Part shown: in pieces, positions 1,071 through 53,400 of the stretch
Layout: every line of letters begins with the position of its first letter
Position numbering within the stretch: position 1 is the first letter of the stretch
Assembly (NCBI GenBank): GCA_965644295.1
Contig: CBFFRP010000143.1
Span: forward strand, 62,001-126,000
Direction of reading: 5' to 3'
DNA length: 64,000 nt
DNA from: Paraphysomonas bandaiensis
Lineage: Eukaryota; Protista; Chrysophyceae
Made by a program: the position numbers and the translations under genes
The notes under the pieces: generated by a model
Told to the model about the DNA's origin: nothing
Seen by the model: only the letters and a program-made list of their open reading frames with translations
Databases searched by the model: none

Positions 1071-1991
1071 CATGACAAGTTACAATGGAGTTCTTGATCT
1101 CCGAATGCTGCATTGTGAAATGTCTTTCAAGCTTCATAAAGACAACATAAAGTGCACATATCACTCATATTTTCTATATATATAGCACCTCGCAGTAGTG
1201 TAACTAATTTTTCTGTTTTGTGTATATATTTTGTTTACATTCTTTCACGATGGTAATTTGACAATACAGTCACCTAAGAAAGGCGATTATCGTCTTTTAG
1301 TATTATTTGACTTTGACTTAACAACTTCAACTAGTTCTATTTACTACTGATACATATCACATTCCGAGTGGCCGCTACGAATATAGTAGTGGTCAACAAC
1401 GTATAGATTAGGCTGCTATACTGATTGCAACGAAACACCTCAAATTCATCTTTATTCTGAACGATTTGACCAACTGAAATGATACTTTTCTAGAAGTGAG
1501 TAATTGATGTGAAAGGTGAAAGGGTGATAAGAACTGATCTCGAAAAAACTGCACCTCCTTTAATGAACTATGTATGAGATGTGAGCAATGAGCAAGATAT
1601 TTATATCTTATATCCACTTATCTACATGAGCACGCAGAGGAAGAGACTACAAGTAGAACACAAACACAACACACAATACGGAGGTTTACTTTTACAGAAG
1701 TTAATATTTTTTGCTAAGGCTTGCTGTTCTCAATTGTATGATTGATATTATAAGATGACATGATAAAGAACCTAGATTGTATTCGGTGTGTTCAACACCA
1801 ATCATTTACTTTTGCAAGACCTTCATCCACATACCTCCGAGCCACTTGGCACAATGCCTAAAGGAAGGCCACCAGATCGCCAATCTCAGCAGGGTATAGT
1901 ATTGTTTCCCCTGGTTGCCGTGAGGTACATAAGGCAGCCTCCGAGGCAAATTGCACACAATGTATGTGTAGTCATATAGCGAGTGGAGTCT

Positions 1992-2256
1992 CATCCCAAG
2001 GGGAGACCTGCAGATCACACGCGCCGGTGAGTCCCAGGACACACGAGCATGGCGAGCCTCATAACACACACAAAGAACGAAAGTGGTCGCACCTTGGTGC
2101 TTGCGGCGACGCACAAGCAGCTTCCGTAGCGTTAAATAGTAGGATAATAGAATTTGTATTGATTAGTTACGGGTAGAGGTCTAACTAGTATGTCTAGCAT
2201 TCAACTAGCCACTACATTGGTGCAGGTTCTTAACGCCTATTGCTAAATAAAAAGAC
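1992..2256 (+). mobile_element. 3'-terminal fragment of the same non-LTR retrotransposon family as 45089-48014
   Basis: Aligns to the reverse complement of ~45098-45361: HPKGRP.D..RR-stop, then CCTTGGTGCTTGCGGCGACGCACAAGCAGC...AACGCCTATTGCTAAATAA..AGAC. A second PKGRPPD-coding patch lies at ~1855-1880. Confidence 0.85.
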
Positions 2257-2792
2257 TTTTAATATAATATATAACGTAAGAACCACGTACTCAGTAATTG
2301 TATCTTGTATTGTCACCAACTTATACTTCAGTTTCATACTACAATATACAAATTACATATAAATATATCTTTCGATCCTTGCATCTCACATATAATACTG
2401 CACTCAATTGCAAACATATAGAATCATCAGATCTCAACATACTTTTTGCAAATATCATTTGACATATTGATAGATTTTCCAGACAGAATACATGTTGCAA
2501 AATGTGTAAAGTACAACTCTATAACTAATAATAATAGTTTCGAAGAAACCTGACAAAACTAATTATCGTAGAAAGAATCCTATCAGGGTATGAAAGTAGT
2601 ACATTACGAAAACAATAACTCATTGGCGACTCCGATGTTGAGTTTGACGTTTATGAGCAATCATTGAAAACTGACAGCTTTCTTTAGGTATTGAAATATT
2701 ATGGCCGTTACTTGAAGAGTATAGTAGTGGTTACAGTGCTACATGAACTAAAGATATGATAGAAATAATAATAGTAGTAAAACTGAAATATA

Positions 2793-3190
2793 TAGTAGTG
2801 AATGTCTTACCATTAGAAATAGGCGTTTAAGAGTTAGAACTAATTTAGCAAAAAACAAAATAACTAACTAGTGCTTAACTCTGATATCCTACTCTTTAAC
2901 GCTACTAAGACGAAAGCTGCTTGTGCGTCACCGCAAACACCAAGATGCAATCACTTTCACTCTATCACTCAAAACAAACGCAGTGAGCAAGCAGAATGTT
3001 GATATACCTGACATCTGCTAACTTTAGGATTTTTAGAGTCCTTAACGTAAACAGCCCGGATGATTGACTTCAGCAGACAGCCCAATAACCCGGATGCCCT
3101 TAAGGTGGGCCCATTCCGGGATGCATGTTTCCTCGTCAAGCCTAAAAACGTCTACACAAATTCCTTGTCAATTGGCTATACATGAGTGGG
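2793..3190 (-). mobile_element. SINE-like element copy A (head missing)
   Basis: Colinear with copy E (55735-56262): GCAGAATGTTGATATACCTGACATCTGCTAAC, GACTTCAGCAG..AGCCCAATA, GGTGGGCCCATTCC. Tail ends AAGACATTCACTACTA on the minus strand. Confidence 0.85.
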
Positions 3191-40797: not shown

Positions 40798-41841
40798 TTA
40801 ACGGCCAGAAGTAGTTGCGGGCTGAGAAAAAGCAGGGATCCCCTGAAGCTTGTACTGATTAGTCAAGACAGACTGCTTGAACACTATCTCAGAGTACACT
40901 CCGTTAACTTGACCGCGAAGATCTAAACGCAACATGTGAGAAGAGACAGAAAGTCTATAGAAACGCACCCTTGAAAGTTCGTTCAGCATCAGAGGAGGAA
41001 AACTTCGCATCACCAATGGGTTCCACTGCATTGACACTTTTGATAATATACGACAAATGAGCACGTAACCCGTCCTCATCCTACAATACAGTCAAAACAT
41101 CGCGCATTTATCATATGTGGAACCCACCAAATGATGAATGTTCTCAATAACTCTGCAAATGAAGAGTGCAAGAGTCAGAATAAAATCGGAACTACAACCT
41201 GCACATACCTGTCTAAAGCAGCATCATAGTAGTCCAACGCGGTCACACGGGATAACACAAGCCCAACAGCTTGTAGTGTGGGGAGGTCAGAGGTCAACAA
41301 CTGCCTAACCTCAGGCTTGTCGTCAGAGATAGAGCTACTAATAAGGCAAGTGGAATCATATCCTTCCATCATATAAGGGGCCTCGGCAGGGTCGGCTTCC
41401 AAAGCCATGATTTTCTCCAGGTTGTCGCACGCATCAGAATTTTTCATATTGTACAACACAATGCTGCCGTATTTAAAGATATCAAAAGCAACTCTATTCT
41501 GTCGGTCAACATAAACAGATAAACAGTTCACGCTTTTTACTTGCTTCATGCCACTGAGTTCGCTACCAACCTTTTGAAGATCAAGAGATCTAGAGTAGAA
41601 ATTATAATTACCCAAAACAACAACAAGCACACACCTTCCCAGATGGTATGAACGAATTACTTCTGCCACTTCTTTCTCTTCATCATCTTCGGCCAGGGTA
41701 AATGTGGCAATATTGGATGCATTGCGCATAAGGGCGCTTCTGGGCATCACAATATTTCTGGAAACTGCAGTATGTCGGAAAGAAGTATATCAATATTAAT
41801 TGCAATAAGATAATATTCCTACCTGCACGGAGTGTAAACAT
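40798..41841 (-). CDS. RMD1/DUF155 (RMND1/YagE)-like protein, divergent, multi-exon
   Basis: IRSYHLGRSLDL, FDIFKYGSIVLYNM and AVGLVLSRVTALDYYD match the DUF155 pattern (vF.yG.vVfwn; s.aLaqS..Ld.yE). Several ~45-55 nt introns. Confidence 0.6.
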
Positions 41842-43099: not shown

Positions 43100-44050
43100 C
43101 TGTCTCATGTGGCATTATCACTTACTCTCGACGGGCCGCCAAATTGCGAGGTGGAAACCCTTCAGGACATGCAGATGGGTAGGATTTTCTCAAAGCAGAT
43201 TTCATTGAGAAATTTTCATTTGAGGACCAGTAATTTTACAGCAAAACTACACCAGTTACAATGATGGGTCTGAAGGTTGTCATTTGAATTGTTTCGTATA
43301 GTTCCCGAAGGATTTCTGTGAGCTACAGATGGTTACGATTCTTTAACGCTGCTTCGTGTAATTTAGTCGGTTGTTAACTCGTAATCGTCTAAATAAGGAT
43401 CACAGCTTAGTGACTGAAAAAGTACTATCTACTGTTAGGTATGAAGCTCTTTCTCAAGGTAATACTGCTGTTGCGAAAGTTCAAGCTATTTGTCGTGCCA
43501 TGATACGTCATAGATGCCAGTGGCAGCCGTTATATTGTTTCATACTTTCAATTGTAGATATCGAAACGATTGAAGACCAGGTGAAGGCATATCTACTTAA
43601 ATATTACGTTTTCATCTCATGTGCAAAGCTGGAAGAGGACCCTGATATATTGGGTGCTCTAGATGATCTAGCCTAATACAGCCCAGTGGTGTCGAGGATC
43701 TTAAGTGGTTTCAGAAATGAAGTTAGAAATATCTGATATTAAATTTGAAAGTGGCTTTTAACAGGAGAAAGTTACTGTCTTTGAGCATGCGCTTGTCACA
43801 GTGTGTCTATGTGGCAGATTTGTATTGAAAAACTAGAGCTTATAACATTGCCACACAGAAACCTCTCTTGTAAGGTGAATACGGAGTTCGTTTACAGCAG
43901 CTCGAGATTCGGTAGGCGATTAGGGCGACTTCACTTTAAAGGGAGATGATACCAAGGGTACTCTGTGGGGAAGATTCTCAACAGCTTCAACTATGTTTCG
44001 CTTTCATGCTCTCTGTTAATATATTCCTCATTATCATCTCAATGAAGAGC
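43100..44050 (+). pseudogene. Possible heavily decayed hAT-like transposase remnant
   Basis: Broken frames give LSLTLDG, ATDG, DHSL and AKVQAICRAM in the order expected for hAT catalytic motifs. Many stops and frameshifts, so support is weak. Confidence 0.28.
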
Positions 44051-45088
44051 TGTTGGTAAGACGTAGAAACCGTGGGAGTTGTGAACAACATCAGTATTGC
44101 TGGTGCATTTATCAGTATTTAGATTTACAGCTCAGAAGTGTAACAGAGAGAAATGTTTGATACTTTAATTGAAAAAAGGAGTGCTTTAGACTGTACTTTG
44201 TTGACTTGTAATTTAAATGTCTTCGTAGCACATAGCAGCATCAAGTGTATTTAGTTTTCCAACAATTCGAAAGGTGTAGTTTGCAGCTGAGCTAGTACTA
44301 AGGTAATTCATTGCTTGGTTGTAGACATGTAGGTAGGCGTTTCTTTTACTTTGCAAGTGGACGAACAAGTATGATACTATGGTGTACCCGTTAAACTTAG
44401 CTAGGCAATCGCTATTAGGAATTGCACTGCACATTGAAGTAGCCGTTCTCTACTTGTAGTGCATAATACAATAGAATACGTATTATAGCCAGAACTAATA
44501 TTGACTAATTTGAAAGCAACAAGCAATCATGTATAGTAATTGCATAAGAGTCAATGGACGAAAACATCTAATATCCAGAACTGTAATGGTGTCTGTTCAT
44601 CTGCTCAAAATATCTGGTTCGACATATATATGATTATTGTTTACTATGCATTAAATATATACTCTGGAGGTCTTATTATTAGCAATAGGCGTTAAGAATC
44701 AGCACCAGCTCAGTAGCTAGAAGATATCTAGTCAAGCTAGATAGACGTCTACCTGTAACTATCTAGTACTAACTCAATTATATCCTACTATTTAACGTTA
44801 CGGAGGCTGCTTATATGCGTCGCCGCAAGCACCAAGGCGCAACCATCTCCGCTCTATTGCTCAAAGCAGAATGTTGATATACCTGATATCTGCTGACTTC
44901 AGTGTTTTTGAGTCCTTAAGGTAAACACCCCAGATGCTTGACTTCAGCAGGCAGCCCAATACCTCAGATGCCCTTGAGGTGGTCCCATTCCGGGATGCTT
45001 GTTTATTCGTCAAGCCCAGAGACGTCTACAAAAGTGACACTTATTAATATCCCTTGTACCACACAAGCATTCGGCTATCTGCTGTCTA
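43446..45088 (+). repeat. 1,643-bp direct repeat, copy 1 (left flank of the LINE)
   Basis: Matches 48015-49656 from GCTCTTTCTCAAGG to GCTGTCTA. The only difference I noticed is CTCAAAATATC vs CTCAAATATC. Confidence 0.95.
44660..45088 (-). mobile_element. SINE-like element copy C, cut by the LINE insertion (head absent)
   Basis: Identical to 49228-49656. Breaks at GCTGTCTA, where the LINE 3' tail starts. Confidence 0.9.
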
Positions 45089-48014
45089 GTAGTGAATGTC
45101 TGATTATTTAGCAATAGGCGTTGAGACCTTGCATCAATTAGTGGCTAGAAGAATGCTAGTCATACTAGTTAGACCACTACCCGTAACTAATCAATACAAA
45201 CTCTTTTATCCTACTATTTAACGCTACGAAAGCTGCTTGTGCGTCGCCGCAAGCACCAAGGTGCAACCACTTCCGTTCTTTTTGTGTGATATGAAATTCG
45301 CCTTTATCGTGTGTCCGTGGACTCACCGGCGCTTTTGATCTGGGGGTCTCCCTTTGGGATGGGTCTCCATTGGTTTTGGAGGGGGCTCAGCATTCTGAAT
45401 TAGGGTCCTGAGTGCACCTAGTTCCAGATGTGTGGGTTGGGAGTGGTGGGGATTGTTGGGAGGAGGAGTTGGGTTTGTAGTATGTGTTACTGTGCTCCTG
45501 TGGGGCCGCGGGTGTAGATAGAGTTGTCGAAGCCGTCGGCGTTGTGGAGGTCTGGGCAGTCCAGTGCTCTGTCGGGTAGGACCTGTGAGGTGTGCACGTG
45601 TGTCTGGAGTCGGATACGCTGTGGGGGGTCTTCGTTGGACCCCTAGTAGTCGAAGGACTCTCGGACGTTGTCTTGACTGACTGCGTTTCGGACGGGGTCT
45701 CGGGAGTAGCCTGGGCGGCCTTTTGGACATGGTGATATAGCGACAACCGCGATCCTGTAACATAAGCTTCGCTGCAGTGTAAAGCGGTTGCAGGAGATTA
45801 ATAACCACTGTTTCTAGGTTCCGTAGACTGTGAGCCGTCAGGTGGTTGTGTATGTCATCTCCGAAGACCGTTTCCAGTTGGGCTGCTGTGATGGTTCCAG
45901 TCCAGTATCTCTCGACCTGTGGGATGGAGGGATTCCAGGCTCTGCTGGAGAGTCTCCGTAGTGCAGATGTGATCCAGTTGGGTAAGGTCTGAGTTCTCTG
46001 TATTTCGTGTAGCACATTTTTATGCGATTGAAATGCAGTTTCCCTTATTTGGGTGATGGATTCATGTGTGCAGTCGAGGCACATATGTTTTAGGGAATCT
46101 AGTCGAAACCCGCAGTCAGAGCATGCGGCTTTGGTCAGGTCAAGCCCCTGTTTGGTTTTGGCCCGGTTCCTCCCTATGCAGAAAGATTTGTCCCATGTCA
46201 GTGCCGTGTTGAGAATTCTTTGGCGTAGATTTGAGCTGAGTTTGTCTTTGGATGCACTGCCATCCGCTTGAGCTAGTTTGCGCGGGAGGTGTACTCCGCT
46301 ATTGGTCCAGTAGCCAGGCGCTCGATCAGGATTGTTTCCGTAGCGTTGATCTCTGGTTGAAGTGTAGTTCTCAAGTGTCCTTAGGTCGCAGAGATCTTGG
46401 AAATCAGTAAGGAGTGGGCTAGAGTAGTATGGCCGTCTTGTACTGTGCAAACGCCAGTGCCATAATCCAGCGGTTAGTAAGCGTTCAATGGCACTGTCAA
46501 TCGCAATTGTACAGACAGTGTAGTTATTTTTTCCAAGGATGCGATCGACTTCATGCCAGTCTTCACCCGCGACTGCGTCCGCAATATAGATGCCCTTGTC
46601 CTCAAACGTCCACTCCGTTTCATCTGTGGTACGTCGTTCGGGATGGGACCTCACCCAGGTCACCTGTCTTTTGCAATCTCTACTGGCCGCGATGCTTTCG
46701 AGTAGTACCCCTTTTGCACGGTGACCGAGAGCTCTGCGTCTTGTGGAGAGTGCTTCCTCAGTACGGGTGCACACTGCCTGACAGTCTGTGTGGCTTCTTA
46801 TGTGTTCGGGAATGCGTGTTGAGAGTATAAGCCCCATGGCTGTGCCTATGAGTTCATATGCGTATGAGTCCAAACCTGGCACATCACGAAAGGGTGTATC
46901 TAGTCGTAGTATTATGGTTGTACCATCTTCCCAGGCATTTTCTGGGGGTAAGTAGTAGACGACCGCTGCACCTCCTCGGTGTGTCCATCGTGTTCGCGGA
47001 TTGACATGAGTGAGGCGACGCGTGGAGAGCGTACTGGCTGTGTATGATCCATCTGTGAAGATTGCCTTGAAAGTATCTGGTTGGACGCTATTAAGGCCGA
47101 GTTCTTGTTTTAGATTGGTCAGCATGTGTTCATCCTGTGGTTCGGGGGGCTCAGGTTGCTGAAGGGTAAGGCCCAATTCCGTTCCCCATTCCCTGAGGCT
47201 GAGAACATAGTGGTGGTATTGGGGCTGTGGCTCTGTTGTCTGAGTGAGTAGAAAATGTGCTGCTTGACCTGCTTCTCCCCCGAGGGTTATTGCGCGCTGT
47301 AGAGATCCCCATTTTTGCTCCTGCGCCGAGTCTGAGAAACGTTTCATACCTAATCCGTTGTGCTTGAGTGAGAGGTAGATCAGTTCCGTGGGGTATCCAG
47401 GGCCTAGACTGAGGGCCTTTCTGTAGAGGGTTGCGCAAGCAGCGTCAATTTCTCTGTACCAGTGTAGCGGCCATGAAGCTTTGGTGGCTCTATAGAGCAA
47501 AGTCGGTATGATTTGGGTCTCGATAACCATGACTTTACAGCCGGCTGAGGCCTGTTTAATCCCTAGGTGTGTGGTCACGACTTTCAGGTATTTTAGACAC
47601 CAATCATGGGAGGCCTTGTCTGTGATTGTGAGAGGAAGGTCTGCTCCGAGGTAATGTATCGACTCTAGTGATGTTTGGATAGGGACTGGGTGTGGACGCC
47701 ACGACCAGTCGTAGAGAATGATGTAGCCAATGGGGTCGGAGGACTTGTTGGAATCTTGTAGGATCGGAAACACTGTGCAAACTACTTTGGGGATAGAGAG
47801 CTCCATTCCCGAAAGTACGCAGAACGCAGATATTTGTTGGGCAATGAGTTGGGCAGCGTGTATGGATTTAGCTATTGTGTTAAGATCATCCGCGAAGGAG
47901 ATCTTTATTTCGCCGGTAGTCGGAGTCGTGAGTTGAATAGTTGGTAACGTTGGACTCGTTGTTGACAGTTCAATGTCCAGCCACGTGAGAAGGATGTCGT
48001 AGAGTGCCACCCAG
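45089..48014 (-). mobile_element. 5'-truncated non-LTR retrotransposon (RT, RNase H, Cys/His finger) with ~230-nt 3' UTR
   Basis: Open ORF with RT, RNase H and zinc-finger motifs. The 3' UTR ends TGCTAAATAATCAGACATTCACTAC. A second 3' fragment lies at 1992-2256. Confidence 0.92.
45323..48010 (-). CDS. LINE ORF2 C-terminal part: RT core end, RNase H, CxxC-H-C finger, Arg/Pro-rich tail
   Basis: RT: ISFADD, GMELSIPK, HYLGA, HNGLGM. RNase H: IFTDGS, SYAYEL, HTDCQA, WVRSH, GIYIADAVA. Finger: CSDCGFRLDSLKHMCLDC. No true start codon, since the ORF begins mid-RT. Confidence 0.9.
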   Translation of the reverse strand: MALYDILLTWLDIELSTTSPTLPTIQLTTPTTGEIKISFADDLNTIAKSIHAAQLIAQQISAFCVLSGMELSIPKVVCTVFPILQDSNKSSDPIGYIILYDWSWRPHPVPIQTSLESIHYLGADLPLTITDKASHDWCLKYLKVVTTHLGIKQASAGCKVMVIETQIIPTLLYRATKASWPLHWYREIDAACATLYRKALSLGPGYPTELIYLSLKHNGLGMKRFSDSAQEQKWGSLQRAITLGGEAGQAAHFLLTQTTEPQPQYHHYVLSLREWGTELGLTLQQPEPPEPQDEHMLTNLKQELGLNSVQPDTFKAIFTDGSYTASTLSTRRLTHVNPRTRWTHRGGAAVVYYLPPENAWEDGTTIILRLDTPFRDVPGLDSYAYELIGTAMGLILSTRIPEHIRSHTDCQAVCTRTEEALSTRRRALGHRAKGVLLESIAASRDCKRQVTWVRSHPERRTTDETEWTFEDKGIYIADAVAGEDWHEVDRILGKNNYTVCTIAIDSAIERLLTAGLWHWRLHSTRRPYYSSPLLTDFQDLCDLRTLENYTSTRDQRYGNNPDRAPGYWTNSGVHLPRKLAQADGSASKDKLSSNLRQRILNTALTWDKSFCIGRNRAKTKQGLDLTKAACSDCGFRLDSLKHMCLDCTHESITQIRETAFQSHKNVLHEIQRTQTLPNWITSALRRLSSRAWNPSIPQVERYWTGTITAAQLETVFGDDIHNHLTAHSLRNLETVVINLLQPLYTAAKLMLQDRGCRYITMSKRPPRLLPRPRPKRSQSRQRPRVLRLLGVQRRPPTAYPTPDTRAHLTGPTRQSTGLPRPPQRRRLRQLYLHPRPHRSTVTHTTNPTPPPNNPHHSQPTHLELGALRTLIQNAEPPPKPMETHPKGRPPDQKRR

Positions 48015-49656
48015 GCTCTTTCTCAAGGTAATACTGCTGTTGCGAAAGTTCAAGCTATTTGTCGTGCCATGATACGTCATAGATGCCAGTGGCAGCCGTT
48101 ATATTGTTTCATACTTTCAATTGTAGATATCGAAACGATTGAAGACCAGGTGAAGGCATATCTACTTAAATATTACGTTTTCATCTCATGTGCAAAGCTG
48201 GAAGAGGACCCTGATATATTGGGTGCTCTAGATGATCTAGCCTAATACAGCCCAGTGGTGTCGAGGATCTTAAGTGGTTTCAGAAATGAAGTTAGAAATA
48301 TCTGATATTAAATTTGAAAGTGGCTTTTAACAGGAGAAAGTTACTGTCTTTGAGCATGCGCTTGTCACAGTGTGTCTATGTGGCAGATTTGTATTGAAAA
48401 ACTAGAGCTTATAACATTGCCACACAGAAACCTCTCTTGTAAGGTGAATACGGAGTTCGTTTACAGCAGCTCGAGATTCGGTAGGCGATTAGGGCGACTT
48501 CACTTTAAAGGGAGATGATACCAAGGGTACTCTGTGGGGAAGATTCTCAACAGCTTCAACTATGTTTCGCTTTCATGCTCTCTGTTAATATATTCCTCAT
48601 TATCATCTCAATGAAGAGCTGTTGGTAAGACGTAGAAACCGTGGGAGTTGTGAACAACATCAGTATTGCTGGTGCATTTATCAGTATTTAGATTTACAGC
48701 TCAGAAGTGTAACAGAGAGAAATGTTTGATACTTTAATTGAAAAAAGGAGTGCTTTAGACTGTACTTTGTTGACTTGTAATTTAAATGTCTTCGTAGCAC
48801 ATAGCAGCATCAAGTGTATTTAGTTTTCCAACAATTCGAAAGGTGTAGTTTGCAGCTGAGCTAGTACTAAGGTAATTCATTGCTTGGTTGTAGACATGTA
48901 GGTAGGCGTTTCTTTTACTTTGCAAGTGGACGAACAAGTATGATACTATGGTGTACCCGTTAAACTTAGCTAGGCAATCGCTATTAGGAATTGCACTGCA
49001 CATTGAAGTAGCCGTTCTCTACTTGTAGTGCATAATACAATAGAATACGTATTATAGCCAGAACTAATATTGACTAATTTGAAAGCAACAAGCAATCATG
49101 TATAGTAATTGCATAAGAGTCAATGGACGAAAACATCTAATATCCAGAACTGTAATGGTGTCTGTTCATCTGCTCAAATATCTGGTTCGACATATATATG
49201 ATTATTGTTTACTATGCATTAAATATATACTCTGGAGGTCTTATTATTAGCAATAGGCGTTAAGAATCAGCACCAGCTCAGTAGCTAGAAGATATCTAGT
49301 CAAGCTAGATAGACGTCTACCTGTAACTATCTAGTACTAACTCAATTATATCCTACTATTTAACGTTACGGAGGCTGCTTATATGCGTCGCCGCAAGCAC
49401 CAAGGCGCAACCATCTCCGCTCTATTGCTCAAAGCAGAATGTTGATATACCTGATATCTGCTGACTTCAGTGTTTTTGAGTCCTTAAGGTAAACACCCCA
49501 GATGCTTGACTTCAGCAGGCAGCCCAATACCTCAGATGCCCTTGAGGTGGTCCCATTCCGGGATGCTTGTTTATTCGTCAAGCCCAGAGACGTCTACAAA
49601 AGTGACACTTATTAATATCCCTTGTACCACACAAGCATTCGGCTATCTGCTGTCTA
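48015..49656 (+). repeat. 1,642-bp direct repeat, copy 2 (right flank of the LINE)
   Basis: Matches 43446-45088. The same 73-aa ORF is listed at 44213 and 48782. Confidence 0.95.
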
Positions 49657-49749
49657 TGTTTGCGGCTCACGTTAGTTTCCCGGAGAAATATATCCGGTGC
49701 ATATCCCTCAGAACTCCTCGAAAAGGTGCGAGTCCGACTTTGTTGAGGG
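49228..49749 (-). mobile_element. SINE-like element copy D, full length (522 bp)
   Basis: TSD-like TGCATTAAATATA (49215-49227) / TGCATTGAATATA (49750-49762). 5' end CCCTCAACAAAGTCGGACTCG. The 3' ~180 nt are homologous to the LINE 3' UTR. Confidence 0.88.
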
Positions 49750-50469
49750 TGCATTGAATATAAATAATGATGTTACTAAATTATTATAATCTGTTAGTTC
49801 AGCAATAGTGAGACGAATCAGTTGGTACTGTACAGTCGTTTCAGTTCTGCAGTATGATGCAATATATATTTTGCGATTGATGTAGGTTAGTAGTGTGAAA
49901 TAGGTGAAATCAACTCATACGTGTAACGGGAGAACATAGTTACAAGTTACAAAGGAAGTAAATTCAGTTACTGATGTGTGACTATGTCAGTTATAGGAAT
50001 GACTAAAGCGCATATGATAAACAATTGCTGAGAACAGATGTCACATGAAAATGATGTGAAGTGTTGAGTTTAATAATTTCTATATTAAGGTACAGTGTGT
50101 TCAACAAAGCAAGGTTATGATTATAATTCAAAACTTAATTTCAGTCACTGTGCCAGGCACATAAGTGAGAGAATTCGTGCGTGAATCAGATATAAGCCCA
50201 ATAATGATAGGTTGTAACCAAAAAATGGAGTATTAGTAAAGCATTTCACACAAGCAAAGATGTAAAAATAACAATTCGATTAAACATGAACAAGTGAAGA
50301 TAGTGTGATGATAAAATCGCTCATTCTATCTGTGCCAGAAAATCTTTGAAAACAGAACACGGTAGCCGAGGCTGAAGTCTTTTACATCAGGCCACTATGA
50401 CCTTAATGAAAATGCACCGTATATGTCGTACATCATCAAATAACTAATTGCTCACACGCTATATACAAA

Positions 50470-53400
50470 TCATTTTAAAAAATCATTTTTCTTGTCATTT
50501 TTTGTCGACCACAGTGGAGCTTGCTCACGAAACGTATAGTCAAAAGTGAGCTCGTCACCAGGACTTAAATTCCGCAGGGCATATATTCCTATTCGATGAT
50601 CGCACTTCACCTACGAACGGTTAGTCGAAAGACTTTTTACTGTAAGACTTACCAATTTGATTTGACATGCACAATTAGGAGTTTTACTGTGATTCGCATA
50701 CTTTGCTTTCGACCCTTTGCGGGTGGCATCAACGACATATTCGTCATTCAAATTGAATAGAAATGTGGAGTCAATTTTGTCGAAAAGCTTCCCTCGTCTG
50801 TCAGCCTCGTCTTGTGATATCAACTCGCCTTTGTACTCCATTATGAAGTCGCCCTTTTGGGCAGGCTCCCTGATAAAAACTCCCCATCCATGAATTGATG
50901 ATCTTCCAATCGATACTTGCTTGCCACGACCCAGAAGTAATTGGGAGTTACAACAGTATTTCGGCTCGTCTGCGGGTGTTGTTCCAAGGGTGGAAGAGCG
51001 TGATCCCACCGTCTCTCTGAGGGCCGGATGAACAGCAGCTCCACATGATAAACACAAATTTGGGTCACATTCTCTTCCAGATTTTACACATCGACAACTC
51101 ATTGTGCGGCACTGTCCCTGGCGGCAATTGCAGCCTTCGAACCTGATCCGACAGGATGCAGAACATGAACAGTAAGGCTCGCAGTACCCGGTAGTAGTAG
51201 CACACGGACACACACCAGCAACACACGGACCATCATGGTTGCAAGGCCGGTACAGATACTTCATACCCTCTTTTCGCACCGCTGTGAGAGACCGTCCCTT
51301 GGCTTTCGCGTCCATCCTGCTGATATATGCAGCCACCTCCTCCTCCGCACTGTTCATATCATCTTCGAAATCGTCCATAGGGCTTGTGCTCTCCCTATCA
51401 TCATTTTCCCTCCCATCCATAGATTTCCAATTGGAAGAAGATTCTTCACAGAGACGGTACGCCTCCTCCGGAGAGCATGTACCGAGAAGCCTCGCTACTG
51501 TGCTGACAGTAGATGGATTGGCATCAACGAGGGGTGCCGAGCTATCGCCCTTCCAGGATAACATCTGGAACAGTTTCAGAGCTACGGCGCCTTCAGTAGA
51601 GCGTTGCTTCACAGGCGTTTGAGAGTAAAGCTCAAAGGGTAGGGTTTCAAGAATATGGGGAGGTCTGTATCCATCATCCTCTACTACACGCTGCCGTTGA
51701 TGTACGGTAGGTACTTTTCTTTTCTTTGATTTGCCTTTCAAATCGGAAAGACCACCTTTTCTTTTTTTGGAATAATTACTATGGAATGGTGCCGATCGTG
51801 TTGTGTCATTTCCTGGGGTATTCTTTAGATCAGAGAAGGCTTGCGGATCACATCGTTCCCGAGGAAGAGGTTGTCTAATAGCATGTGTTCTACAATCGTA
51901 TATGTAGCACCTACGACAGAACAAATCTCTAAAGTTCTATAAGAATATTAGCTTGTGTTAGGGAGCCTATATGTTGGGATAACTGCACTTTACCTCTGCT
52001 ATAGTTGGAAAGTGAGCGCTATCTCTGAATCCAGTTGCCGGTAAGAACCTATCTTCTGCTCCCGGTGCAGTACACGGCAAGCTCTTTCGTGCGAGAAGAG
52101 GGACCAGAGCAGAAGATCCCAGTCGCCATTCCAGCCTCTCATTGAGATTTGGGTCCAATGATCGACTATTATTCCGCCTAAAAGCTTCTCCTCTCTCTCG
52201 CGCCTTGCGCAACTGACTCACAGAGAGACTCAACGCCGACATTAAGCACGTTTCAGTCTCCGTCGGGAGTGCGACGATATCACCTTCTTCCTCTACACTG
52301 ATGCCGTTATCCATATTTTCTTCCCTACCATCATCAATTCCGTCCAACAGGTATGCTGTGGCAGTCTCTAGGATTTCGCCACCGATGTCCGCCTCCAGTT
52401 CACCTGGAACGTAATCATATGCCGAAGTGTCGAAACCAGTGGTATCATCGTCACCAAAGTATGGGATGTACCGCAGCACGGGTTCATCCTCAGCCAAGTA
52501 ATTCTCGCCCACCCTCACCCATGTCAGGGAACGGGGAAGGGGCACAACCACTGGTATGACAGCACATGGTAGCCGGACATTCCTCTGCCAGACTTTTTCA
52601 GAGACATCGGCACCAGTGGCAGAAGCACAGGAAGATGAGTTTGGTGACGACCCAGGACTGTAACGACGAAGTTGGTGAAAATAGAGTTTAGACATCCAAT
52701 CTATTCCCTCGGCTGAGCATCCCGCGAGGAGTGCACGTGAAATGCCCAATCTCTCTGAAACAGGCCATGAGACGCGGGCACAAGACAACGTGCACACAAT
52801 TACCGATCGCTAGGGGTGGAGAACCTCGCAAACAACGTGTCGCTCTCTTCCTGGCGACAACCACCTTCTTTCCACGCACACGACCGCGCCTCTGACCTTG
52901 CACTGCCGGCAAGTCCCTGAACCTGGTGACTGCCGTTTTACTTCCTTCCAGCATCCGAACAGTTTCCTTCCCGCAGGCCTCAGATGCAGAACTATTCCTC
53001 TCTATATCGATAGCGACAGAAGTGACCATACGGGTAAATTTCGATTGATGCTTACCCTCCTCCCCGTCCTCCAATGCGCACGAAATTGACCCTGGACGGC
53101 GATGAACGACTCCAACTCGCATCTACGCAACAAGCGATTGAGAGAGGATCTCAAGAAAACTGCTCACGTAGCATATCGAAACAGAAGCATACCTGTTGCA
53201 AAAGCACCGCATGACTACCACCATCCATACCATTCTTCGCTTGAGACATAGCAGCACCTGTTGAATGCTGCGCGATATCCTCTCCCTGATTTGGTGTAGC
53301 AAGGGCCATGACAAAGGAGACCTCAGGGCTCTGAATTCCACTCGGATGACAACTAGATGATTGGTCAATTTCGTGGCGCTTGTATTTCAAATGTTGCCAA

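Follow-up and report, generated by a model that had tools for sequence, protein, structure and literature searches.

A 5'-truncated LINE between two near-identical 1.64-kb target copies in Paraphysomonas bandaiensis: a probable long target-site duplication

Introduction

LINE insertions are usually thought to add to the genome only the element itself and a few duplicated bases. If the second-strand joint is made far from the first nick, however, each insertion is also a tandem segmental duplication, which can copy exons or regulatory DNA and later invites recombination. Most of the documented cases so far come from cultured human cells, from cancers and from mutation-accumulation lines of Chlamydomonas. 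A locus of the stramenopile flagellate Paraphysomonas bandaiensis raises the question of whether a natural LINE insertion has done the same. Within the window (the whole 64-kb stretch of DNA analysed here), a truncated LINE lies between two near-identical copies of a 1.64-kb sequence, designated X, an arrangement that an earlier note had read as a possible giant target-site duplication (TSD).

Structure of the Locus

Both ends of the LINE adjoin X exactly, giving the order X1 - LINE - X2, with the following features:

43446-45088, unstranded: X1, the target copy adjoining the LINE 3' end; its plus strand ends in ...CTGTCTA
45087-45088, unstranded: TA at the 3' junction, whose source is the target or the RNA tail
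45089-48014, minus strand: 5'-truncated LINE (2926 nt) with the 3' part of the RT, the C-terminal region and the 3' UTR
45323-48010, minus strand: LINE ORF remnant, open over 895 aa, with CX2CX8HX4C and TDGS motifs recognized by eye
48015-49656, unstranded: X2, the target copy at the LINE 5' truncation point, followed by undisturbed flank
48015-48016, unstranded: GC microhomology; the target shares these bases with the LINE sequence immediately upstream of where the element is truncated
44607-44610 (AAAA, in X1) and 49176-49178 (AAA, in X2): the sole X1/X2 difference, a homopolymer indel in an A-run
49233-49749, minus strand: host SINE copy (the target), intact across the X2/flank boundary
about 44665-45088, in X1: truncated twin of this SINE

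The presence of a LINE between two near-identical 1.64-kb target copies is confirmed. X1 and X2 align end to end with 0 substitutions, and the near-perfect identity claimed for the direct repeat stands with the small correction that its copies differ by 1 nt in length (1643 versus 1642 nt). The repeat boundaries are exact, since the bases immediately outside differ on both sides (a/g at the left, g/t at the right). The unique part of X (X positions 1-1224) occurs twice in the 62.5-Mb assembly, both times at this locus, and neither a third copy of X, nor an empty allele of the locus, nor a second haplotig of the region was found in that assembly. Because its unique part is present only at these two places, X is neither a dispersed repeat nor a flank transduced from another place. 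No other direct repeats of 150 nt or more were found within the window.

The target itself carries a further indication of what the site looked like before insertion. Eight other genomic SINE copies align colinearly with the one at 49233-49749 right over 49656/49657; the first nick would have fallen 93 nt from the SINE 5' end. As the earlier note had pointed out, the interrupted SINE therefore continues intact past X2, and this continuity across the X2/flank boundary means that removal of the LINE plus one X restores a clean empty site. The TSDs of the SINE copies were short, as had been stated, although they measured 7-13 bp and not strictly 12-13 bp.

The LINE Family and the Two Ends of the Insert

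The window LINE belongs to a young family of at least 40 copies that are 98-100% identical, share a common 3' end, have no terminal repeats and start at 5' ends that differ from copy to copy. In the ORF of a longer copy (L012), residues 317-610 match the Pfam family RVT_1 (E=4.9e-15), and the best PDB sequence matches of the RT of the longer copies are to human L1 ORF2p. At least 10 copies encode an APE domain (PF03372, 42-43 bits against a cut-off of 24.5), which precedes the L012-type segment by 0.4-1.1 kb and lies in the same open frame as the RT, with frames reaching 3021 aa; examples are C80:67063-67776, which precedes position 68157, and C440:8739-9452. The position of the APE relative to the RT was judged from coordinates. 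An RT, an upstream APE and a common 3' end are the features that mark the family, at the level of predicted domains, as an APE-type non-LTR retrotransposon (LINE). In the 772 aa after the RT, no RLE or other Pfam family was detected at E<=5 (in a search against the Pfam profiles), no PDB sequence match was obtained and no PD...D...K motif was recognized by eye after CX2CX8HX4C.

The truncated element of the window is less informative in this respect. Its 895-aa ORF gave no significant Pfam domain (RVT_1 appeared at E=0.085 only) and no Pfam or PDB match that would indicate an RNase H domain, the TDGS and CCHC motifs being by-eye readings. The RT previously assigned to it is accordingly borne out by the longer copies, but not by a significant match in the window's own ORF. 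In the alignment with other copies, the window LINE is set apart by a single substitution and by the in-frame insertion of CTA, both private to it, and it is 99.8% identical to its nearest relatives.

Concerning the left boundary, the terminus ...CATTCACTAC is found in 22 of 28 other copies, with four ending 1-3 nt short and two cut earlier (L030, interrupted by other sequence, and L034, at a contig end). Among the 24 copies ending in CACTAC, the tail is followed by T in 21 and by TA in 12. Since the other copies share this terminus and mostly continue with a target T or TA, the left boundary is the true 3' end of the element, as had been proposed. The 2-nt TA overlap described at the tail is likewise real, T or TA of the target following the tail in most copies, and in L017, L036 and L037 the TA lies inside the TSD. 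At the window insertion the target starts with TAGACAGC.

The right boundary had been taken for a 5' truncation within the RT, and it indeed falls at about residue 487 of the partial family ORF, within the RVT_1 match of the longer copies. On the LINE strand, seven longer copies read ...catgcGC/CTGGGTGG at this point (the slash marking the junction), and the target reads ...gaaagaGC/ttcatacc. The microhomology at the 5' junction amounts to these 2 nt (GC) only, for which the chance expectation is 1 in 16.

Target-Site Duplications Across the Family

The usual TSDs of the family measure 6-14 bp. Examination of TSD lengths at the other insertions, the check that the earlier note had called for, yielded two further long cases, so that 3 of 13 scorable insertions (the window locus, L022 and L023) carry long duplications. 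L022, on contig C285, shows a perfect 174-bp TSD with 5 nt of tail microhomology, that is, 174-179 bp. At L023, on C271, the flanks on either side of the LINE are 100% identical and in register over 278 + 931 nt, implying a putative duplication of ~1325 nt (about 1.3 kb), the first 116 nt of which lie beyond the sequence compared; an unrelated element of ~8 kb has since inserted and splits one of the repeat copies. These two loci lend independent support to the suggestion that the element could generate segmental duplications, and the family apparently does sometimes duplicate host DNA on insertion, an outcome already known from human L1 and from a Chlamydomonas LINE.

Several other candidates were rejected. 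At L033 (C210), the 5' flank recurs 8.6 kb downstream, with the 3' flank beside that copy, which is best read from the flanks as a paralogous empty site in a ~5.7-kb segmental duplication, the TSD being at most 9 bp. L039 and L035, considered as truncated copies devoid of a TSD, are actually LINEs split by nested insertions. The 1.5-kb 3' flanks of the full-length copies L012, L013 and L015 have no second copy upstream on the same contig, which rules out a long TSD at these insertions, the second 100% match of L013 corresponding to an overlapping contig end (C131).

Proposed Mechanism and Alternative Explanations

All that a target-primed insertion with a 1.64-kb stagger would be expected to leave in the sequence is present at the locus, and this interpretation, put forward in the earlier note, is supported as far as sequence can inform it. 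A single retrotransposition event of an active APE-type LINE probably made both the insert and the duplication. In the proposed pathway, the LINE endonuclease would nick the window plus strand after ...CTGTCTA (45088 / 49656), and the freed 3'-OH would prime reverse transcription of the LINE RNA; we infer that this primer is the plus-strand end now retained by X1. In the sequence, the cDNA stops inside the RT and its end is joined, through the 2-nt microhomology, to host DNA 1.64 kb away. The second strand would then be primed from a 3' end of the other strand at 43445/43446, ~1640 nt away and not at the usual 6-14 nt, and fill-in of the staggered gap would copy X twice. The distant 3' end may have come from a second endonuclease cut, a pre-existing nick or the nascent-strand end of a replication fork, further options being a sister-chromatid end or break-induced replication. 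The event is very recent, as had also been suggested earlier from the near identity and the open ORF, because the X copies show no substitutions and the LINE is almost identical to its nearest relatives.

The origin of this distant 3' end leads to a variant of the same single event that we regard as a reasonable, although not the leading, possibility. In this variant the cDNA end joins a sister-chromatid 3' end or the nascent strand of a fork, or the reciprocal end undergoes break-induced replication, the outcome being a LINE-bridged tandem duplication. Such a model has been put forward to explain the L1-bridged tandem duplications of cancers (PMC7058536), as well as duplications of 1-10 kb that were regarded as 'large TSDs' (bioRxiv 10.1101/2024.12.14.628481). 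It would dispense with 1.6 kb of unwinding between two nicks, which is hard to picture otherwise, and agrees with the fact that the three long lengths (174, ~1325 and 1643 nt) share no common unit. Its final product is, however, identical to that of a distant second nick, and the two cannot be separated by sequence.

The remaining explanations dispense with a single event. If the locus were an assembly chimera of two haplotypes, with the LINE at the right end of X in one and at the left end in the other, a crossover inside the collapsed LINE would produce the observed order. The assembly copes badly with this repeat: many contigs stop within LINE copies, the redundant ends of C440 and C131 overlap at a LINE junction, and L019 and L020 lie on a pair of nearly identical contigs that part ways inside the LINE. 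In addition, the only X1/X2 difference is a homopolymer length, typical of consensus error. Nevertheless, both novel junctions would have to be in real reads, which demands two independent same-orientation insertions exactly 1.64 kb apart, a coincidence with an estimated prior of a few per thousand per insertion (for ~100-200 copies in the 62.5-Mb assembly). That coincidence would have to recur at 174 bp (L022) and at ~1.3 kb (L023), and insertions of this kind on two haplotypes are improbable once and very improbable three times. Moreover, the repeat copies of L023 differ by the 8-kb insertion, present in one only, long reads easily span a 2.9-kb insert, and the assembly holds no second haplotig here. 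Given the recurrence and the exact junctions, both a chimera and recombination between two insertions are unlikely; an assembly artefact is disfavoured, and we consider the chimera improbable. In the second of these scenarios, two independent insertions flanking X would have undergone unequal homologous recombination (NAHR), leaving real DNA of the form X-LINE-X. The product would be structurally indistinguishable from the observed locus, and LINE and SINE copies do cluster locally, several family insertions sitting in SINE sequence. However, two recent same-orientation insertions 1.64 kb apart and a crossover would all have had to precede any substitution in X, and the recurrence at L022 and L023 is explained no better than by long TSDs. 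In an alignment of 26 copies, searched for a mosaic or chimeric LINE, the only variants are private ones and shared young-subfamily markers. No mosaic of subfamily markers is seen in the LINE, which says nothing either way in so uniform a young subfamily; on balance, we hold NAHR to be very improbable. Least credible of all would be a pre-existing tandem X-X invaded later by the LINE, or a flank transduced from another locus. Duplications with LINE-free junctions do exist in this genome, as illustrated by the ~5.7-kb unit of C210 with one LINE-filled and one empty copy, but this reading requires the LINE to have hit the X/X junction precisely, leaving neither a TSD of its own nor a deletion. 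Transduction is ruled out by the lack of a third copy of X in the assembly that could have served as source, and the insert ends in the LINE's own tail and not in flank sequence.

Comparison with Known Systems

Kilobase-scale LINE TSDs have been published (PMC5223499, PMC9977147, bioRxiv 10.1101/2024.12.14.628481, PMC7058536). Human L1 in cultured cells produces TSDs from >100 bp to >1 kb, and in lines deficient in NER it does so frequently (Servant et al. 2017, PMC5223499; earlier L1 sources, as cited there, are Gilbert 2002/2005 and Symer 2002). In HeLa cells fewer than 10% of L1 TSDs exceed 100 bp, long ones being a minority in wild-type cells, and the large TSDs were attributed to a second nick far from the first (PMC5223499). 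Like the window element, L1 is an APE-type LINE with a canonical 3' junction, is often 5'-truncated and can leave direct duplications of hundreds of bp to kb. It differs in its poly(A) tail (...CACTAC here) and in that its insertions were recovered from reporters, whereas the present one is a fixed or assembled insertion in the genome of a free-living protist. The frequency of long duplications also looks higher here (3/13), and that without a known repair defect.

In Chlamydomonas reinhardtii, de novo insertions of Dualen-4b_cRei are flanked by duplications with a median length of 900 bp (Lopez-Cortegano et al. 2023, PMC9977147), which were read as widely spaced nicks and which the authors linked to the two endonucleases of the element, APE and RLE. 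This is likewise a protist LINE family with repeated kb-scale TSD-like duplications. The family described here, in contrast, has an APE upstream of the RT and no detectable RLE or other Pfam domain in the 772 aa after it, and most of its insertions still show TSDs of 6-14 bp. L1-bridged tandem duplications, reported from the genomes of cancers and from clones that express L1 (Rodriguez-Martin et al. 2020, PMC7058536; bioRxiv 10.1101/2024.12.14.628481), resemble the locus in having a 5'-truncated LINE as their junction, with a 3' breakpoint of the endonuclease type, but they are somatic, arise in unstable genomes and reach megabases, whereas the present case would be a 1.64-kb germline-equivalent event in a unicellular eukaryote. 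The rotifer LINE R9, according to Gladyshev and Arkhipova 2009 as cited in PMC9977147, has a 126-bp TSD, also far above 5-20 bp; as described there, it is site-specific for rDNA and its TSD is constant, unlike the dispersed targets and lengths of 6 bp to 1.6 kb observed here.

That a single young family of a stramenopile flagellate provides three natural cases, of 174 bp, ~1.3 kb and 1.64 kb in length, suggests that the outcome is widespread among LINEs. We advance more tentatively the idea that long duplications are a regular outcome of this LINE family or of its host, with about one fifth of insertions making the second-strand joint at a distance of 0.2-1.6 kb from the first nick. If so, small tandem segmental duplications might arise steadily and naturally from this family in a wild protist, with no second endonuclease, much as they do from L1 in human cells deficient in repair or from Dualen in Chlamydomonas. 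With its many near-identical recent copies, the family is a tractable system in which to study what determines where the second nick falls.

Genomic Surroundings

The duplicated DNA has an RMND1-like gene on one side and an Ezh2-like SET gene on the other; it appears to be intergenic, with no direct functional effect evident. The SET/CXC ORF at 50611-51924 had been considered as the 5' part that a SET-bearing LINE would lack here; being single-copy in the genome, it was assigned to a host gene.

The duplicated interval

The placement of a LINE between two copies of a 1.64-kb direct repeat is confirmed, and the X-LINE-X layout described in the earlier note stands, the two copies of the duplicated target X showing no difference except one indel in an A-run (4 A at 44607-44610 against 3 at 49176-49178). 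Repeat search and local alignment delimited the copies.

43446-45088, 1643 nt: X1, left copy of X
45089-48014, minus strand: non-LTR retrotransposon fragment (the LINE), between X1 and X2
48015-49656, 1642 nt: X2, right copy of X

The bases adjoining X1 and X2 on the outside differ from each other at both ends, so the repeat boundaries are exact; the duplication measures 1639-1643 nt, according to how the TA and GC at the joints are assigned. A perfect repeat of 1.64 kb is too long to arise by chance, and no further direct repeat of at least 150 nt was found in the 64-kb window.

Positions 1-1224 of X are unique, occurring only at these two sites in the whole assembly (62.5 Mb, 669 contigs), while positions 1225-1643 are a portion of a SINE that is repeated hundreds of times, its tail and the LINE 3' UTR being about 79% similar. 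The colinear alignment of eight other SINE copies spans 49656/49657 and reaches 49749, meaning that the SINE, broken off where X1 stops, runs on unbroken beyond X2, and that the site becomes continuous again when the LINE and one X are removed, as had been claimed. X appears to be intergenic, with a host gene on each side:

41175-41750, minus strand: DUF155/RMND1-like ORF
50611-51924, minus strand: CXC+SET Ezh2-like ORF, single-copy

The roughly 280-bp repeat at 49840-50117 shows 75% similarity to sequences that, on many contigs, come in pairs spaced about 3.8 kb; it is probably a solo LTR belonging to a small LTR element. Elsewhere in the window, two SINE or LINE-tail fragments were noted, one at 2795-3160 (minus strand) whose ...CATTCACTAC-TA tail matches that of the LINE, and the other at 1984-2259 (plus strand), 88% similar to the LINE 3' UTR and carrying a SINE-type ...AAGAC-TTTTAATA tail.

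The LINE family and the insertion joints

The own-genome search (62.5 Mb, 669 contigs), in which the window corresponds to C143:62001-126000, returned at least 40 copies of the family with 98-100% identity. The terminus ...CATTCACTAC is found in 22 of the 28 other fetched copies, with four stopping 1-3 nt short and two cut earlier; the CACTAC end is followed by T in 21 of 24 copies and by TA in 12 of 24 (window copy included). This common terminus, with T/TA following, identifies the X1/LINE boundary as the true 3' end of the element, in agreement with the earlier note. In longer copies a single open frame extends upstream, with an RVT_1 match at residues 317-610 (E=4.9e-15) and human L1 ORF2p as best solved-structure matches. 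The window copy begins at about residue 487 of this frame, that is, within the reverse transcriptase (RT), where its 5' truncation had been placed. At least 10 copies also encode an apurinic-like endonuclease (APE) domain, Exo_endo_phos, 0.4-1.1 kb farther upstream, inside open frames that reach 3021 aa (e.g., G000:C440:8739-9452 and neighbours, G000 being this assembly and C-numbers its contigs); the window copy would be the 3'-terminal 2.9 kb of an element about 11 kb long. Neither Pfam nor PDB sequence searches gave a match for the 772-895 aa following the RT; the CX2CX8HX4C and TDGS motifs in this region were read by eye. Several insertions of the family lie inside SINE or LINE-tail sequence (3' flanks of copies L014, L016 and L023; window 45088), which may reflect target preference or repeat clustering.

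On the plus strand, X1 ends in ...CTGTCTA, and the LINE tail in reverse complement (gtagtgaatg...) starts immediately after. Such a joint is what target-primed reverse transcription (TPRT) off the ...CTGTCTA 3'-OH would leave, and the TA could pair with the ...CACUAC(UA) RNA end. At the 5' joint (marked by a slash), the sequence is ...catgcGC/CTGGGTGG in seven longer copies and ...gaaagaGC/ttcatacc in the target (LINE strand), giving a microhomology of 2 nt (GC) that is weak evidence by itself.

Target-site duplications across the family

Thirteen insertions were scorable for target-site duplications (TSDs) among the fetched copies. Duplications exceed 170 bp in three of them and 1.3 kb in two, the usual clear TSDs being 6-14 bp.

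Short TSDs of family copies
L036: 6 bp
L032: 7 bp
L017: 7-11 bp
L040: 11-13 bp (borne out by a paralogous empty site)
L037: 12 bp
L016: 14 bp
L033: at most 9 bp (by paralogous empty site)

L033 (G000:C210:34284-45862) lies in a segmental duplication with a unit of about 5.7 kb and 97-99% identity, the LINE being in one copy and an empty site in the other, a natural filled/empty pair. In the full-length L012, L013 and L015, no second copy of the 3' flank was found upstream. L020, L030 and L038 were uninterpretable, and L035 and L039 proved to be LINEs split by nested insertions. For the SINE, TSDs of 12-13 bp had been reported; the upper range holds, but not the strict lower limit, since copies show 7-13 bp.

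Two other copies carry long duplications. L022 (G000:C285:113905-119826) is a truncated 3.1-kb LINE within a perfect 174-bp repeat, beyond which target and LINE tail have 5 nt (ACTAC) in common. L023 (G000:C271:25379-31300) is a truncated 3.2-kb LINE from an older subfamily. Directly 5' of it, 931 nt (C271:30092-31022) recur with 100% identity at C271:17499-18429 on the same strand, and 278 nt farther upstream recur, also at 100%, from 117 nt past the LINE 3' end. Because the order and register of both blocks agree on the two sides of the LINE, the duplication is taken as about 1325 nt, of which 1209 were verified at 100%, the first 116 lying outside the fetched DNA. This arrangement implies that an unrelated element, about 8055 nt long, has since inserted into the downstream repeat copy. 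The inserted element, Z, is also nested in L039 (C159:106957-112505) with a 5-nt duplication; it measures about 1.35 kb there against about 8 kb at C271:18430-26484, with 99.3% identity over 1.1 kb, the shorter version looking like a solo LTR and the longer like a complete LTR retrotransposon.

Origin of the repeat

The exact junctions, together with the recurrence of long duplications in L022 and L023, support the earlier interpretation of a LINE insertion with a giant duplication. To account for the contig, a structure must supply both X-end/LINE-tail and LINE-5'/X-start, two junctions that are novel. Simply joining a filled to an empty allele was rejected because it would put the LINE 5' end beside the sequence right of X2 and not beside the first base of X. 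Pre-existing duplication of X, or a transduced flank, was likewise rejected, given the exact X1/X2 boundaries and the absence of a third X copy in the assembly.

The one artefact compatible with the contig, a haplotype path switch within a collapsed LINE, each haplotype having its own insertion at opposite ends of X, is improbable but is retained because the assembly struggles with this repeat. Many contigs end in LINE copies; contig ends overlap (C440:2436-3935 and C131:5-1504), C131 beginning 4 nt from a LINE 3' junction and duplicating the C440 end; and L019 (C434) and L020 (C562) are 99.96% identical over 5.3 kb before diverging inside the LINE. Near-identical contig pairs and contig ends of this kind point to haplotigs or unresolved repeats. 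However, a path switch would need two same-orientation insertions 1.64 kb apart, with comparable coincidences again in L022 (174 bp) and L023 (about 1.3 kb), and the L023 repeat copies differ by the 8-kb insertion. NAHR in vivo between two LINE insertions faces the same prior problem of two nearby insertions in one orientation, and is slightly less probable still.

The insertion with its giant duplication is probably the outcome of a single TPRT event. The sequence itself shows the element's 3' terminus joined exactly to a TA target, a truncation in RT, a microhomology joint and a duplicated interval. On this reading the endonuclease would have nicked the target at 45088/49656, where TPRT began; the second strand would then have been primed about 1.64 kb off, by a 3' end at 43445/43446, and fill-in would have left X in two copies. 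That distant 3' end might have arisen when the same duplex was cut a second time, from a replication-fork or repair nick, or by a sister-chromatid or break-induced-replication route, all of which give identical products.

LINE insertion with a long target duplication is of a kind already known from published L1 and Dualen-4b cases. In HeLa cells, TSDs above 100 bp accompany fewer than 10% of L1 insertions, and in lines deficient in the DNA repair pathway NER they accompany 57-91% of those recovered, 38% of these long TSDs exceeding 1 kb (PMC5223499). Dualen-4b produced flanking duplications with a median of 900 bp in Chlamydomonas mutation-accumulation lines, tentatively put down by the authors to dual endonucleases (PMC9977147), and L1 has been seen bridging a tandem duplication as large as 22.6 Mb (PMC7058536). 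What is new is the occurrence in a stramenopile APE-type family, in a natural genome, with an apparently high proportion of long duplications (census of 13 insertions).
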